64,000 nt of DNA from sequence record NC_048673.1; one strand, 5' to 3'. Below the pieces are notes generated by a model. The model did no database searches and had not been told where the DNA came from. It saw only the letters and a program-made list of their open reading frames with translations. Shown here piece by piece: positions 32,995 to 39,170 of the stretch. Positions within the stretch are counted from its first letter, which is position 1. Every line of letters begins with the position of its first letter. A program made the position numbers and the translations under genes.

Positions 32995-34347
32995 ATGATT
33001 AATAATACAGAACAACATATTAGTTCTAAAGCTGTTGATGTGGTGCTAGATCCTAGCACCACTAATTTCCCAGCAACAACTAATGATGTACAAAAAATGG
33101 CTGAACTCATACAACCCCATGCAATTGGAAGGTATGAGGATATGAAAGCGACCGAAACAAAAATGGGTATTCTCAGGATTGCGACGGAAGCGGAAGTATT
33201 GGCAGGAACCGTGGCTGATGCAATCGTTACTCCCAAGACCCTACAAGCCAAATGGGTGCGCCCAGATGCATCAGAAACGGTTAAGGGTCTAGTTAGGTAC
33301 GCTACCAGCGCGGAACGTCTAGAAACAGCAGCAAGCGCATCTATAGGCATTAATACGGCTGGTATATGGGATATCATCAGAACAAAAGCAATTGGTTCTA
33401 CCACAAAAGCCGGTACGTTGAAATTATCGACGATTACCATTGGACAACAAGGGACTGATTCAACTACTGCAACAAGTCCTGATGTTGTTAAGGCAATGAT
33501 AGATAAGTTCGCAGTTACTGCAAATTCCGGTGCAACTGAATTGACCTCTGGGATAGTTAAGATTTCCCCATCCCCAGTAATTAATGCGGCTTTACATAAC
33601 GGTGTAGCAGTTAGCCCGAAAGGTTTTATTGAGACTCGCGCAACTCAATCAAGAGTTGGTACAGTAAAAATGGCAACTCAAGCCGAGTCTAATGCCCGTA
33701 CTGCAACTGACGTAGCCATTAGCCCTGCAACTCTTCCGATTGCATCGTCTTCCCAGTGGGGTATTGTTGCATTGACAGACGTCGCTGTACAAGGGGCAAC
33801 GAATAAAGCGTTGAGTTCCCATGGAGCAACAACCCTTGTTGCAAAAACTGGGGGAACAATGACCGGTGCGCTGATCACTCCAAATATATATCTTACAAAT
33901 CCCCAAGATGGTTCACCAAATGCGGTTGTGAGATATGATTGGGCTGTTAGTGCATTTGATGATAAACAAAATCAAATAAATGGCAAGGTTAACCGTGGAA
34001 GCGCAGTAACTCTTAATAGAACCGACAAACAATTGATTTTTAATGCTGCTCCATACGGAGGGCATAAAAGTGGTGACTTTAATATGTCACAGCCGTGGTG
34101 GAATTATGATGGGTTAATAGTTGTATCCTCTGGGGATGATGGTAGACACATGAAGTCGAATTATATATCGAAGGCACAGATCTCTATCCTTCAAGATAAT
34201 TTCGCTAACGCTTGGTGGATTGCAGACACTGATTCTACTTGGTGGATTGGTAGGTTTAACGCCAATGGTACTTATTTCCATACCACAGGTGACAACTGTA
34301 TTATATGGCATGTTTGGGGTGTTAATGACATATACCAAACAACCTAA
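32995..34347 (+). CDS. 12: short tail fiber gp12
   Basis: NNTEQHISSKA and repeated ATET..G..R.AT..E units. Confidence 0.9.
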   Translation: MINNTEQHISSKAVDVVLDPSTTNFPATTNDVQKMAELIQPHAIGRYEDMKATETKMGILRIATEAEVLAGTVADAIVTPKTLQAKWVRPDASETVKGLVRYATSAERLETAASASIGINTAGIWDIIRTKAIGSTTKAGTLKLSTITIGQQGTDSTTATSPDVVKAMIDKFAVTANSGATELTSGIVKISPSPVINAALHNGVAVSPKGFIETRATQSRVGTVKMATQAESNARTATDVAISPATLPIASSSQWGIVALTDVAVQGATNKALSSHGATTLVAKTGGTMTGALITPNIYLTNPQDGSPNAVVRYDWAVSAFDDKQNQINGKVNRGSAVTLNRTDKQLIFNAAPYGGHKSGDFNMSQPWWNYDGLIVVSSGDDGRHMKSNYISKAQISILQDNFANAWWIADTDSTWWIGRFNANGTYFHTTGDNCIIWHVWGVNDIYQTT

Positions 34348-34381: not shown

Positions 34382-37300
34382 ATGGAAATTATTAAACCTG
34401 TATTGGATGACCTGAAATATACTTCTGATATGCCTGTTGCTGGTTCTGGTCAAAAACAGGTTGAATGGATTAAAAATGGTGAGCAACCACAAGGTGCAGA
34501 TCCTTATATTGTTGGTGATAAAGGGGGCGTTTTAAACCGCCCCTCTACTCAAATTTCTGCCAACGTAGAGACATTGGATAAAAACCAAGAAAAAATCCTT
34601 TCTAAAATGTCGGAAGTTATCGACAAGGTGAATATTCATGATGATATAATTAATGCTGGTGACGGACGAGATTTATATCAACGAGTTGGCGATTTGGAAA
34701 CCGAAATGGATGTCCATAGTGGGATCCTTGAAGATATCAAAGAAACCGACGTAATCCTCGACGCAAAAATCCAGTCAATTTCCGATAATATCGGAGTTGG
34801 TGATCCATCTCTTAGATTCCGAACTCTCCGAGCGGATGACCTTCATATCAAAAAAATGTTGGGTAATTATAAAGATTTTGATATTGATGGTGTTCCATCA
34901 CCCGGTTCACTTTCTTCCGGGGTAAAAGGTCAAATCGAGCGTAACTATAACACAGGTGTTAATCTTGATGTTCGTGTTACTTCTCTCGAAAAATGGTGGG
35001 AAGACTCCACACCTGCATCTTTGAGGGAAGAAGTTAACCAGATTAGAACCGAACTCGGACAAGACCCGGATCCGACTAGGAACATTTATTCTCGTATCGG
35101 CGATTTAGAAATGGCTGATGAAACAAATTCACCTTTGGTTCAAGAGCTTGTAGAACACACTGGATATGGTGAATTTCCTCTTCAATACCTTGATGTACAA
35201 ACAGATTCTTATCAAACAGTAGATAATCTATACGATTACTCTCTACATGTCAAGAAAGACGTGGATTATATTAGTGGTATTGCCAAACAAACCGAAGGTC
35301 TGTCCGATGACTTGGCTCGTTCACTTGGTTCGGCTAGTGATTCCACACTGGATACCACCGCTTGGGGTAGAATTAATGATCTTCGTGTCCGTATGGAGAA
35401 TAACGAAGGTATTCTAGGATCTAGTCCTCTAGATGGATTGCAGGGAAAAGTTAAAGAAGTAGACCAGAGAGAGAAAGAACATTTCGAAGATCTTGATGGT
35501 CGTGTTTCGAGTATATCAACTACTGTTAACGTCGAATATAGAACTTCTATTGAGGATCTACAAAATACCGTAGGTAATCCAAACACAGGTTTGGTTATCA
35601 AGGTAGAAGGGACAAAAAACGTCGCTGACGACGATTACCGTAGAATTGGTTCATATCAAGCATCGAAAGATATGTATGAACAGATGTACCGTGATTATAA
35701 GAATGGTGCTGGATATATCCCTAACCCAACAGAAACTCGGCTTGGTGCTGTATGGTCGCGAGAATATGATGGTGCTAACTGGGTATGGCGAGATTTGTTT
35801 ACCACTAACTTTGTGGTTGGTGATAACAATAAGATTACCGCCATCGACGGAACCACACTTGTTTCTTATTCTACTGGTTCTGATGGGAAATATATCCCGA
35901 CCTTTGGTCATAACGGAACAACCAAACTCCGTATAGTCGGCGACATTATCGGAAATATTTCTCTTGATACAACCTCTGATATCAGAAAATATGGGAAAAC
36001 TATTCTTGGCTCTACCGATCAAACTATAAAAGTTGGTCAGAGTGATAAGAATATAGTTATGGTTGGTAAGGATATCGATTCTTTCAAGTATAACACACCA
36101 ACCGGTGAATTTGATGTTCTGCATATTGGGAACTACAAAAAATATATCACCGACGTTAACCCAGAGAATGGATTTACCCTAAACCAGAATGCGGTAATTG
36201 GTTATGCAGGCGCAGATGTTATTAAATTAGATAACACTACAATAAATATTGGTTCTGCTAATACAAACCTCGCATTTAAGGGAAATGTCGGCGAATTGAT
36301 TATGGACCAAGACAAAGCGTTTAAGATGAATGTTGGTATGGGTAAACATCTAAACGTGGTCAATAACTTTGGTGGAATATTGACATACGGTGATATTGAA
36401 ACTACTAACGTATTTGCAACGGACCTTTATATTCAAGGTACTGGGGTTGATCGGTTTAAGGTTTGGCACCAAGGTATGGATGCACCCGCAGATGGTAGTT
36501 TTTACGCTCGTAAAAACAACCAATGGATGGTCGTTGAACAGGGTGGTTCTGGTACTGGTATTATTGGTGATGCACCACAGTCCGGATTGGCATACGCTCG
36601 GGTAAATGACGATGGTGTTGGTTTCTGGCAAGCCGTAGGCGAAAGAAATATAACCCTAGCAGAAAACGTATCTATAATGGCAAAAACCAATAGTGGTACG
36701 ATTACTGCATTTACCGTTGATTCTGCAACCGTAACAACTCGAATTGGTGGAACTACAGGGAAAATAAACCTTCGTGGTACTGTATCCGATTTCAAATTAG
36801 AAAGTAAAATTTCTACATCTTATGGTTCTCTTTTAGAAAGTACCCAAACCAAAATAGTGATCGGCGACACAACCACACCAGTGAATGTATATTCTACTGG
36901 GAATCTGTTTGTTGGTGTTGGTTCTGATGCTAAGAAAGTTTGGACCGACGCACATGACGCACCAAACAACGCGAATTTCTACGCTCGTAAGGGTGGGCAA
37001 TGGACTCTAATCCATGACGGTATAGACCCAACCAAGGATGTTTCTGTTGGTGAAACCAGCGATTTCATCATTGGTGGATATAACGTAGCCAAGGTGGATA
37101 CAGTTGGTGTCGATAAGCTAATGGTTATTGGTGATAGTAGAACGTTCATGAAGTTTGACGGTAAGGTAACTAACCTCAAGCTTGCAGAAGTAGGTGCCAA
37201 TAATAGTTTCGGTATTACCACACAGGTAAATAATGTCGATAAGAACATAATTAGTATATCGCAACCTTCTACAGAAAAGTTTATCGCAATTGGTGACACC

Positions 37301-37507
37301 GATCTACCGGTTCGTATTACCGCATCTGAGGTAACAATCAATAACGATAAAGTCCTCACAAAGGATAGTTTCGAAGCACCAGCAGACGGAAACAAGTACG
37401 TAAGACAAGATGGTCAGTGGACAAGAGCGTATTACTACGGTGATTTTGCTACAGACGCACCGACCAGTCCTAAAGAAGGTGATGTGTTCTTCGAATTCAT
37501 CAACTAA
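34382..37507 (+). CDS. wac: fibritin (neck whisker), extended
   Basis: N-terminal IEWIKNGE...GVLNRP-type motif, segmented coiled coil, five foldon-like motifs; late promoter at 34344. Confidence 0.88.
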   Translation: MEIIKPVLDDLKYTSDMPVAGSGQKQVEWIKNGEQPQGADPYIVGDKGGVLNRPSTQISANVETLDKNQEKILSKMSEVIDKVNIHDDIINAGDGRDLYQRVGDLETEMDVHSGILEDIKETDVILDAKIQSISDNIGVGDPSLRFRTLRADDLHIKKMLGNYKDFDIDGVPSPGSLSSGVKGQIERNYNTGVNLDVRVTSLEKWWEDSTPASLREEVNQIRTELGQDPDPTRNIYSRIGDLEMADETNSPLVQELVEHTGYGEFPLQYLDVQTDSYQTVDNLYDYSLHVKKDVDYISGIAKQTEGLSDDLARSLGSASDSTLDTTAWGRINDLRVRMENNEGILGSSPLDGLQGKVKEVDQREKEHFEDLDGRVSSISTTVNVEYRTSIEDLQNTVGNPNTGLVIKVEGTKNVADDDYRRIGSYQASKDMYEQMYRDYKNGAGYIPNPTETRLGAVWSREYDGANWVWRDLFTTNFVVGDNNKITAIDGTTLVSYSTGSDGKYIPTFGHNGTTKLRIVGDIIGNISLDTTSDIRKYGKTILGSTDQTIKVGQSDKNIVMVGKDIDSFKYNTPTGEFDVLHIGNYKKYITDVNPENGFTLNQNAVIGYAGADVIKLDNTTINIGSANTNLAFKGNVGELIMDQDKAFKMNVGMGKHLNVVNNFGGILTYGDIETTNVFATDLYIQGTGVDRFKVWHQGMDAPADGSFYARKNNQWMVVEQGGSGTGIIGDAPQSGLAYARVNDDGVGFWQAVGERNITLAENVSIMAKTNSGTITAFTVDSATVTTRIGGTTGKINLRGTVSDFKLESKISTSYGSLLESTQTKIVIGDTTTPVNVYSTGNLFVGVGSDAKKVWTDAHDAPNNANFYARKGGQWTLIHDGIDPTKDVSVGETSDFIIGGYNVAKVDTVGVDKLMVIGDSRTFMKFDGKVTNLKLAEVGANNSFGITTQVNNVDKNIISISQPSTEKFIAIGDTDLPVRITASEVTINNDKVLTKDSFEAPADGNKYVRQDGQWTRAYYYGDFATDAPTSPKEGDVFFEFIN

Positions 37508-37518
37508 AAGGGTTTACG

Positions 37519-39015
37519 ATGGCTAACAAAGTGTATAAAAATGGGGTGGTGCATGACACCATCCCATCCATTTATAAAAATAACTGGCATAGGTCCGTAC
37601 CGTGGGTTTTTTCTAATGGGGCATGGCATAGAGCTTATGACCTTGGCGACGAAAACCTATTAGCAAATAGTCGAATGTTGAATGGTACTGATATTTTTTG
37701 TTATTCTGACGGGGTTGTTATTGGAAACGTTCCACCATGCTATACCGTTTATAATAACTCGACAAATACGGGAAATAACGCTTTTGCTATAAGCTTCAAC
37801 CAAGATAATGAAAATACGAAAGGATATACATTCAGAACTATTGATAGTCGAATGTTCTTCCAAACCCGTATTTCGTTAAAGGCTGGAAAAACTTATACCG
37901 CAAGCGTTATGGTTAAAAACAACGATCTTACGTTGGTTCATAGTGGTGTACTTGCTGATATATACATGGACAATGGTGACCCCATTGATAATTATCTAAC
38001 ATTTAAAACTAAATTTGATAATAATCCATTAATTGGTGATGAGAGAACCCGTATATACTCTACTTTCACCGCAAAGAAAGACTGTCTAATACAATTTAAC
38101 TTTGGTGTTGGAGTTAGATATAACACAAATGGTGATTTCTCTTTTGATTCACCTATGGTTACAAATACAAATATCCTGATCGATTATCAACCAACCCCCC
38201 ACGTTTTAACCAACGAAGCAATTATTTTAAATAGAGACGCTGGATTCTCTACCACTGGTTCTTTGATGGTTGCGAACAAGACACATAAAGTTTCTGGTGG
38301 CCTTGTTATTGGTGATATCGCTACAGAACTAGTGATAGCTTCAAAAAACATTGGTGGTATTTCTACTGGTATGGGCATAAATCTAGAAACTAACACATTC
38401 TGGGTTAAAACTCCCGATGGTGTATATCATACCAAACCGTTGAAAAGACCATTACCAAGAAATAACAGTATTGGTGTATCTGTTTGGTTTGATGTATCTA
38501 ACGGATTTGCCCAAAACATAAGGTTGTATGTAAACGGTGAAGTCTACGCAAGAATAACAGACCCATATCTTAGTCTTGATACAGGGCTTAATACTGTATT
38601 CGGGTTAAATAGTAATAACATCACCATTGAACAATTTGAAATTTACATGGATGGAAACAGTCATCTATTTAATATTTCAAATCAAGGTAATGGAAAATTG
38701 GTATCTACTGATGGAAAACTGGTTCTTGATATCGTCGGTGATACAATTTGGTGGAGTACGGTTGCGCCTAAAATAACGAAACAACCGCAAGTTATATATA
38801 ACGCGCAAGTTGGTGATACGGTCGTGATAGAATCGGATTGTGATAGATTTTCCACAGTTCAATGGAAAACCTCAAGGGGTGTTGAAGTAGGTAATTCTAA
38901 AAATCTAGAGATAGAAGTTACCCCAACTCTAGACACATCAATTTTCTACTACGCCATTTATAAGAACAGTTATGGTCAAGTAACCACTCGCTCAACTAGG
39001 ATCCAAATATCTTAA
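37519..39015 (+). CDS. putative whisker-associated adhesin (beta-rich domains plus C-terminal Ig-like domain)
   Basis: Trp-rich N-terminus (WHRSVPWVFSNGAWHRAY); C-terminal PKITKQPQ...VQW...YYAIYKNSYG Ig-like signature. Confidence 0.55.
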   Translation: MANKVYKNGVVHDTIPSIYKNNWHRSVPWVFSNGAWHRAYDLGDENLLANSRMLNGTDIFCYSDGVVIGNVPPCYTVYNNSTNTGNNAFAISFNQDNENTKGYTFRTIDSRMFFQTRISLKAGKTYTASVMVKNNDLTLVHSGVLADIYMDNGDPIDNYLTFKTKFDNNPLIGDERTRIYSTFTAKKDCLIQFNFGVGVRYNTNGDFSFDSPMVTNTNILIDYQPTPHVLTNEAIILNRDAGFSTTGSLMVANKTHKVSGGLVIGDIATELVIASKNIGGISTGMGINLETNTFWVKTPDGVYHTKPLKRPLPRNNSIGVSVWFDVSNGFAQNIRLYVNGEVYARITDPYLSLDTGLNTVFGLNSNNITIEQFEIYMDGNSHLFNISNQGNGKLVSTDGKLVLDIVGDTIWWSTVAPKITKQPQVIYNAQVGDTVVIESDCDRFSTVQWKTSRGVEVGNSKNLEIEVTPTLDTSIFYYAIYKNSYGQVTTRSTRIQIS

Positions 39016-39026
39016 GGGGCATTAAA

Positions 39027-39170
39027 ATGCAAACCGCTGTACTTTTATTCTTTAGGACAATAGGTCTCGAAATTCTAACTCAGTTGCTTAAGGTGGCGGC
39101 GGAAGCAATCACCAAAAAACAGAAGCAGAATGAAGAAGATAAAGAGGCTAACAAAAATAAAGAACAATAA
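39027..39170 (+). CDS. small protein (47 aa; not in the ORF track)
   Basis: MQTAVLLFFRTIGLEILTQLLKVAAEAITKKQKQNEEDKEANKNKEQ; AAGGGG SD; terminator at 39174-39206. Confidence 0.55.
   Translation: MQTAVLLFFRTIGLEILTQLLKVAAEAITKKQKQNEEDKEANKNKEQ

Follow-up and report, generated by a model that had tools for sequence, protein, structure and literature searches.

In Aeromonas phage AS-zj (Straboviridae, Ceceduovirus), the gene directly downstream of the fibritin gene wac encodes a 498-residue protein, which very probably binds specifically to the C-terminus of the fibritin. On balance, we favor the fuller reading that the double-length, Aeh1-type fibritin has in this protein a tip protein of its own, retained on the whisker and adhesive in role. 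The locus lies in a 64,000-nucleotide (nt) stretch of sequence record NC_048673.1 (hereafter the window, in whose positions all gene coordinates are given), which is 100% identical to AS-zj over 6.2 kb and maps to bases 165930-229929 of the genome (NC_048673). The fibritin gene (HWB28_gp369, 1041 residues) occupies 34382..37507 on the plus strand, and the gene for its putative partner (HWB28_gp370) runs on the same strand from an ATG at 37519 to 39015. The gene pair and the functional dependence of the fibritin on its partner count as known, because the homologous gp218 of phage Aeh1 has been published as a fibritin chaperone; the idea of a protein held at the tip is absent from that work (Letarov and Krisch, Ecol Evol 2013, PMC3797505). 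What is new here is the predicted interface, the domain map and the proposed adhesin reading.

A double-length fibritin ends in an unfinished foldon-like unit

The first-pass annotation of this stretch had placed the end of wac 11 nt before the start of the next gene, and both the open reading frame (ORF) list and the raw sequence bear this out. The last fibritin residues are ...ATDAPTSPKEGDVFFEFIN, a TAA at 37505-37507 is the stop codon, and the 11-nt spacer AAGGGTTTACG (37508..37518, +) carries a Shine-Dalgarno-like AAGGG ribosome-binding site. Late-promoter and terminator scans of the boundary gave no signal parting the two genes and, since neither element lies between them, they are probably co-transcribed. 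Expression as a single read-through or frameshift fusion was considered and rejected: the frame offset between the two genes varies among relatives (2, 2, 0, 2, 0, 1, 0, 1), every downstream gene starts at an ATG of its own behind its own ribosome-binding site, and no fused protein occurs among 1.84 billion representative proteins.

Identification of wac as a fibritin gene is secure in both sequence and position. It is assigned to phrog_9687 (‘fibritin neck whisker’) and also to phrog_1056, and residues 7-410 (profile positions) match T4 fibritin 3j2o at E 1.5e-60, with 2bsg also matched at E about 1e-60. The protein is homologous to T4 gpwac in its N-terminal collar-binding domain and segmented coiled coil, and the gene lies in a T4-like structural module, after gene 12 and before gene 13. 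The Pfam family Fibritin_C (PF07921) matches at residues 388-474 (35543..35803, +; 35.6 bits, cut-off 21), with a foldon-like motif at residue 458, so that the match is internal and not terminal. T4 fibritin has 487 residues, and this internal region is where a fibritin of T4 length would end.

The AS-zj chain continues for 565 further residues of beta-rich repeated segments (internal repeats at E 4e-10 and 2e-5, seen by pairwise comparison; a scripted blastp self-comparison gave zero off-diagonal rows). Motif scanning, profile matches and these repeats mark residues 475-1019 (35804..37438, +) as a tail-fiber-like C-terminal extension. Foldon-like (D/E)APxDGxxYxRxxGxW nodes lie at about residues 700-720, 730-752, 859-880 and 998-1019, and the family profile matches the T4 foldon in engineered PDB constructs at positions 705-746, 869-886 and 1008-1024. 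The extension appears as units of a beta-rich segment of about 140 residues with one or two foldon-homologous nodes at the end, an unusual multi-foldon fiber architecture that could be of interest for protein engineering with the T4 foldon.

Beyond the last complete node, 22 residues of chain remain (residues 1020-1041, ...GDFATDAPTSPKEGDVFFEFIN; 37439..37504, +), which conservation and the complex-model contacts described below mark as a C-terminal docking tail. Judged by motif alignment, this tail looks like the first half of a further foldon-like unit that has no return strand and ends where the hairpin turn would be. In a relative, Aeromonas phage Ah1 (L006:1863-4969), the fibritin is annotated as two ORFs of 882 and 163 residues (wac_1 and wac_2) next to an intact downstream gene; the split would come from a frameshift or from an error in sequencing.

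The partner combines a Trp-rich N-terminus with three binding-type domains

The 498-residue protein belongs to phrog_9363 (‘unknown function’), which it matches over its full length (E 3.9e-247; positions 1-498 of 499 in the profile). It is 37.5% identical to Aeh1p218 (Aeh1 gp218) over 98% of its length, and identity to the proteins of Aeh1, PX29 and phiAS5 is 36-39% over 94-98%. The family is small: a profile search recovered only about seven full-length members from the 1.84 billion representative proteins, and some 160 other matches fell on the immunoglobulin (Ig) domain alone (profile positions 420-505), belonging to Ig_3/I-set repeat proteins. Searches returned zero Pfam families at E <= 0.1, zero NCBIfam matches, no solved-structure homologue in the PDB for the family or for its N-terminal 60 residues, and no paralogue in the AS-zj genome.

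The sequence had been described earlier as a Trp-rich N-terminus followed by beta-rich, lectin-like domains and a C-terminal Ig-like domain, a description that our analyses support throughout. Three of the eight tryptophans fall within the first 40 residues, where W, Y, F and H make up 23% of positions, compared with 11% elsewhere in the protein. We built an AlphaFold2 (AF2) monomer model on an 11-row alignment and assigned folds by structure comparison (VIA-align) against 48,161 PDB representatives. The predicted local distance difference test (pLDDT) score averaged 67, lying below 50 for residues 1-86, at 59-81 for residues 110-210 and mostly at 75-90 for residues 230-498. Foldseek agrees with the fold assignments given here, namely carbohydrate-binding module family 4 (CBM4)-like, LamG-like and Ig-like; the first two of these (CBM4/9 and LamG/ConA-like) rest on fold, with Pfam sequence families unmatched at the threshold above.

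In this model the protein divides into four parts. Residues 1-43 (37519..37647, +) would form a Trp-rich N-terminal docking module with two predicted beta-hairpins (strands 4-13 and 29-38; pLDDT <50 when folded alone). Domain 2, residues 44-228 (37648..38202, +), is a predicted CBM4/9-like beta-sandwich: residues ~60-218 align with CBM4-2 (4bj0) at Z 11.5, with a root-mean-square deviation (rmsd) of 2.8 over 133 aligned residues, and CBM70, a porphyran-binding CBM, CBA120 TSP4 and Kp7 fiber domains match at Z about 10.3-10.5. An Atlas feature match to a viral CBM_4_9 cluster (0.92) is a lead only. Domain 3, residues 229-413 (38203..38757, +), with pLDDT 75-90, resembles a LamG/ConA-like lectin jelly roll; residues 230-416 align with laminin LG 5xau at Z 13.0 (rmsd 3.3, 163 aligned), and pentraxins, galectins and CBM66 follow at Z 10.5-12. 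GH16 glucanases are also among the fold matches, but the ExDxxE and ExDxE motifs are both absent, and we rejected glycosidase activity for this domain. Domain 4, residues 414-498 followed by the stop codon (38758..39015, +), is Ig-like (I-set/Ig_3-like) by profile matches and structure comparison, aligning with the Ig domain 3bfo at Z 11.1 (rmsd 1.8, 82 aligned). The AS-zj protein itself falls below the Pfam thresholds for Ig families, and the Cronobacter S13 homologue passes Pfam Ig_2 with 32.7 bits (cut-off 27).

The two genes always occur together and are most conserved at their apposed ends

Of 50,697 phage records, tblastn matched the 498-residue protein in 40 and the last 241 fibritin residues in an identical set of 40, made up of 34 from Aeromonas, 4 from Cronobacter and 1 each from Citrobacter and Vibrio. 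In all 40 the two matches lie directly side by side, two metagenomic contigs pair them likewise, and in every case examined a phrog_9363 member stands directly after an Aeh1-type long fibritin. The gene order 12, long wac, 498-residue-type gene, 13 is kept across the Aeromonas, Cronobacter, Citrobacter and Vibrio phages and the metagenomic contigs.

Conservation was measured on an 11-row fibritin alignment, whose farthest members are 25-31% identical to AS-zj, and on a 15-row partner alignment. Residues 1018-1037 are the top 20-residue window of the entire 1041-residue fibritin (0.845, mean 0.56), and the tail motif KEGD(V/L)FFEF(I/V)N is almost invariant even in those distant members. The maximum in the partner falls at residues 39-58 (0.82), and residues 19-38 are also high (0.66) against a mean of 0.55. 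In addition, 8 of 17 positions agree between the partner hairpin PWVFSNGAWHRAYDLGD and the last fibritin node KYVRQDGQWTRAYYYGD.

Codon comparison of AS-zj with phage CC2 gave synonymous and non-synonymous differences of 30:6 for the 498-residue gene, 101:13 for wac and 25:3 for gene 13, which indicates purifying selection over the whole length of the partner gene, similar to that on wac and gp13. Along the partner, identity falls from the N-terminus and domain 2 toward the jelly roll and Ig domain, a mild gradient of the kind expected of an anchored, outward-facing protein.

A complex model places one partner N-terminus on three fibritin tails

The first-pass annotation had suggested modeling a C-terminal fibritin trimer with the partner N-terminus, and such a model does predict an interface. 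Three copies of fibritin residues 940-1041 were modeled with one copy of partner residues 1-232, using the AS-zj pair and 3:1 stoichiometry only. The interaction prediction score from aligned errors (ipSAE) was 0.79, 0.80 and 0.79, against 0.02 for the best control. Of solved complexes, 58 of 80 reach this mark, as do 2 of 110 mismatched pairs; these counts serve only as a rough calibration here because the job used the author’s own alignments and contained multiple copies. At least 93% of contacts are common to the runs, and in the complex the partner has a pLDDT of 82 or higher.

The predicted interface joins fibritin residues 1019-1041 of all three copies to partner residues 1-40. The tightest pairs link fibritin 1033-1038 with partner 26-31 and 36, and residues 1035-1037 of a second copy with partner 17-18; the contacts are modeled as strand pairing of the fibritin tails with the partner hairpins. 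Recall of a solved complex is an unlikely source of this result, because the partner N-terminus has no PDB relative; with the foldon part of the fibritin, by contrast, the prediction model is certainly familiar. The complex model thereby supports binding without showing it. As to the fiber-tip and adhesin pairing that had been proposed by gp37-gp38 logic, a physical pairing is supported by the adjacency in 40 of 40 records, the conservation maxima, the ipSAE contrast and published co-expression of the Aeh1 pair; the protein is not a member of the gp38 family, and that part is analogy only.

From published chaperone to candidate tip protein

As the first-pass annotation stated, T4 is known to lack a gene between wac and 13. 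This agrees with the report that inserted ORFs after wac are confined to the Aeh1 cluster and that gp218 homologues occur in all Aeh1-related genomes (Letarov and Krisch, 2013, PMC3797505). According to the same authors, Aeh1 fibritin expressed alone is insoluble and forms inclusion bodies, this type of fibritin being incapable of self-folding, and co-expression with gp218 in E. coli at 25 C or below yields soluble, trypsin-resistant, SDS-resistant oligomers. They name gp218, which is soluble on its own, a chaperone, attributing the data to unpublished work, a 2004 proceedings article and a 2005 J Bacteriol paper, and they suggest that the long, tail-fiber-like Aeh1 fibritin may share in host recognition (PMC3797505).

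We propose a mechanism that would accommodate these observations. The first ~40 partner residues, folded as two Trp-rich beta-hairpins, would dock on the three fibritin tails (...KEGDVFFEFIN), so that one copy caps the trimer tip and completes in trans the foldon-like unit that the fibritin chain leaves unfinished. We refer to this as a ‘split foldon’, a description that is an interpretation of contact lists and motif alignments and not of coordinates. Docking would bring the three C-termini into register and nucleate the trimer, whereupon the long fiber would zip up, and this would explain the reported chaperone effect of Aeh1 gp218. The cap would then stay on the tip, as gp38 of T2/T6/S16 stays on gp37; retention is somewhat the likelier outcome because the interface is extensive and a further ~450 lectin-like and Ig-like residues are conserved. 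Each of the six collar whiskers would then show CBM4-like, LamG-like and Ig-like modules and act as a weak glycan or surface adhesin, with reversible contact or sensing added to the roles that whiskers usually have. Within this scheme, the ligand, the biological role and retention in the virion are what we infer.

Several points weigh against a retained adhesin. The sole experimental statement about the family is that gp218 is a chaperone, and it is silent on whether gp218 co-purifies with fibritin (PMC3797505); the folding dependence is shown only for this 37%-identical relative, and only in the literature. Virion proteomics, electron microscopy and binding data for family members were not found in the literature searched, a search of limited coverage. 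On the modeling side, the AF2 monomer is mediocre, given its mean pLDDT and shallow alignment, and domain 2 and the N-terminus are weak when folded alone; likeness to lectins at the level of fold does not show sugar binding; and the complex score is the model’s own confidence, from a job unlike the tool’s calibration in which 3:1 alone was tried. Finally, typical host-range determinants are hypervariable, and this protein, 68% identical between AS-zj and phage 65, is not.

One alternative is a pure assembly chaperone by the logic of T4 gp38/gp57A, which would bind the tails during trimer folding, then be released and be absent from virions, its lectin-like domains serving substrate handling or solubility. 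The co-expression result that gave gp218 its name and its solubility by itself (PMC3797505) fit this alternative, transient binding would suit the predicted interface equally well, and the moderate divergence rate of the protein is atypical of receptor-binding proteins. We nevertheless think a chaperone alone rather unlikely. The ~450 residues and three binding-type domains behind the docking module are under purifying selection (30 synonymous and 6 non-synonymous differences) across Aeromonas, Cronobacter and Vibrio phages, and so long a conserved stretch far exceeds the needs of known fiber chaperones. Beta-strand pairing with all three folded tails, predicted to involve 163-174 contacts, resembles a stable cap, and RB43-type fibritins keep Ig-like domains permanently at the same end (PMC3797505).

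A second alternative is that the partner is itself a trimeric distal fiber segment, trimerizing through its foldon-like N-terminal hairpin to form a 3:3 joint like that of T4 gp36-gp37. Foldons trimerize, and the match between the partner hairpin and the last fibritin node would fit such a joint, as would the tight linkage of the two genes, which are probably translated at similar rates. Yet in the 3:1 model one N-terminus touches all three tails at high confidence, so little room would be left for two more copies, and beyond residue 43 the protein offers only globular domains, with neither a coiled coil nor a triple-helix segment. We consider a 3:3 joint improbable. It is very improbable that the protein is an unrelated neighbor acting elsewhere, for example decorating the capsid through its Ig-like domain as Hoc does, or serving as a lectin that is secreted or sits on the cell surface, and that it follows wac for historical reasons only: Ig-like domains do occur on many surface proteins of phages, Hoc among them, but the strict co-occurrence and adjacency with the fibritin extension in 40 of 40 records, the conservation maxima at two apposed termini, the experimental dependence of Aeh1 fibritin folding on the homologue (PMC3797505) and the complex model (0.79 against 0.02) all speak for a partnership.

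A retained adhesive cap, the reading we prefer, would matter in several ways. Whiskers of T4 fibritin are assembly aids and environmental sensors for the long tail fibers; a lectin/Ig adhesin on six extended whiskers would make the whiskers a second host-contact organ and would bear on the host range of phages that are being studied against Cronobacter and the fish pathogen Aeromonas salmonicida. It would also give a 20-year-old ‘chaperone’ observation a structural explanation, and trans-completion of a foldon-like unit would be a compact, testable docking principle for cargo on trimeric fibers. Were the protein a chaperone only, the finding would be an ordinary annotation upgrade of a ‘hypothetical protein’. 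A bolder extension, possible though we do not expect it, is that in the Aeh1/65/CC2/S13 clade the whiskers form a genuine second set of receptor-binding fibers whose adhesin is fixed by a split foldon that both nucleates folding and attaches the cap, and that this tail-plus-cap code may recur on other fibers.

Neighboring genes and variation among relatives

The surrounding genes in AS-zj follow T4-type order: a gene 12-like gene (32995-34347), wac, the 498-residue ORF, a 47-residue ORF and genes 13, 14, 15, 16 and 17. The 47-residue ORF (HWB28_gp371; 39027-39170, +), 3' of the 498-residue gene, encodes a product that is hydrophobic in its N-terminal half and rich in Lys and Glu in its tail. 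In Vibrio phage vB_VmeM-32 a 58-residue ORF of like character lies in the same place, with weak similarity to it (28% over 36 residues, pairwise E 0.01).

The C-terminal end of the partner differs among phages. In AS-zj and phage 65 the chain stops at the Ig domain, and in the Vibrio protein (413-416 residues) that domain is missing altogether; homologues in the Aeh1 and S13 groups (L001:5980-7584, L002:6001-7548, P0006-P0011) have an acidic tail after the Ig domain, with repeats such as TEDGxxIxTEDG. A further fiber-like gene follows in these tail-bearing groups, and AS-zj and the Vibrio phage have neither the tail nor that gene. This pattern hints at a possible further docking step.

These third genes have features of their own. 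Aeh1 gp219 (L001:7594-8199), described as having no homologues in other Aeh1-like phages and as possibly a pseudogene (PMC3797505), and Cronobacter S13 gp093 (L002:7550-8761) have in common an N-terminal module of about 53 residues, MxxIKIS...G.E...VQ.G (32% identity, E 2e-6). S13 gp093 also holds foldon-like motifs and heptad-like repeats. PX29 and phiAS5 have a 201-residue ORF after the gp218 homologue; AS-zj has no such third gene.

A metagenome contig (ERZ27315841 k119_960397; L012:7293-11054) carries a second fiber-like gene, of 902 residues, between the gp218 homologue and gene 13. This fiber ends in ...GEPDGHIYFQHI (PDGHIYFQHI), resembling the fibritin tail, and is followed after 9 nt by a gene for a 347-residue protein with the N-terminal hairpin-like repeats IKVNGGY, IKVNGVYK and VKDGGVYQ. 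The 347-residue protein has a possible Ig-like stretch and a sub-threshold Laminin_G_3 match (E 0.0019, 18.8 bits, cut-off 27.6), and its similarity to the 498-residue protein is not significant. From sequence, this pair may be a second case of fiber-tail plus cap logic.

Comparison with known systems

The closest known system is Aeh1 gp218, a true homologue that belongs to the same PHROG and occupies the same place directly after an Aeh1-type fibritin of ~1035-1041 residues. The two cases differ in what has been described, as published work on gp218 covers the folding requirement in E. coli co-expression only and leaves aside domains, interface, stoichiometry and virion location, and in the extra C-terminal tail that Aeh1-type members have beyond the Ig domain and the AS-zj protein lacks.

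The T4 fibritin foldon offers a structural parallel: the AS-zj extension has at least four foldon-homologous nodes and the partner N-terminus has a similar hairpin, but the last AS-zj fibritin unit is incomplete and ends after its first strand. RB43-type fibritins likewise place an Ig-like domain at the distal whisker end, with 1-3 such domains at the C-terminus of the fibritin chain itself (PMC3797505). There the Ig domain is supplied in cis; AS-zj would deliver it in trans, together with two lectin-like domains.

T4 gp38/gp57A and the Mu/P2-type Tfa proteins are likewise fiber-specific helpers encoded beside a fiber gene and acting on its C-terminal end, and some Tfa proteins remain bound to the fiber tip. 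The 498-residue protein is two to three times larger than these and has three binding-type domains. Membership of the tail fiber assembly family Caudo_TAP (PF02413) was rejected, with no match at E <= 0.1 and none in NCBIfam.

The gp38 protein of T2/T6/S16 is encoded directly 3' of the fiber gene, is needed for fiber maturation and sits as a single polypeptide at the tip of the gp37 trimer. The 498-residue protein has no sequence relationship to it: Pfam GP38 (PF05268) is unmatched by this protein and genome-wide. The distal part of gp38 is a glycine-rich PGII sandwich, and that of the 498-residue protein a predicted series of CBM, LamG and Ig domains; the carrier of gp38 is a long tail fiber, and that of the 498-residue protein would be a neck whisker on which we infer it is retained in the virion. 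In organization the two nonetheless run parallel, for the 498-residue gene also lies directly downstream of a fiber gene, its homologue is needed for maturation of that fiber, and its N-terminal module is predicted to sit on the trimer tip.

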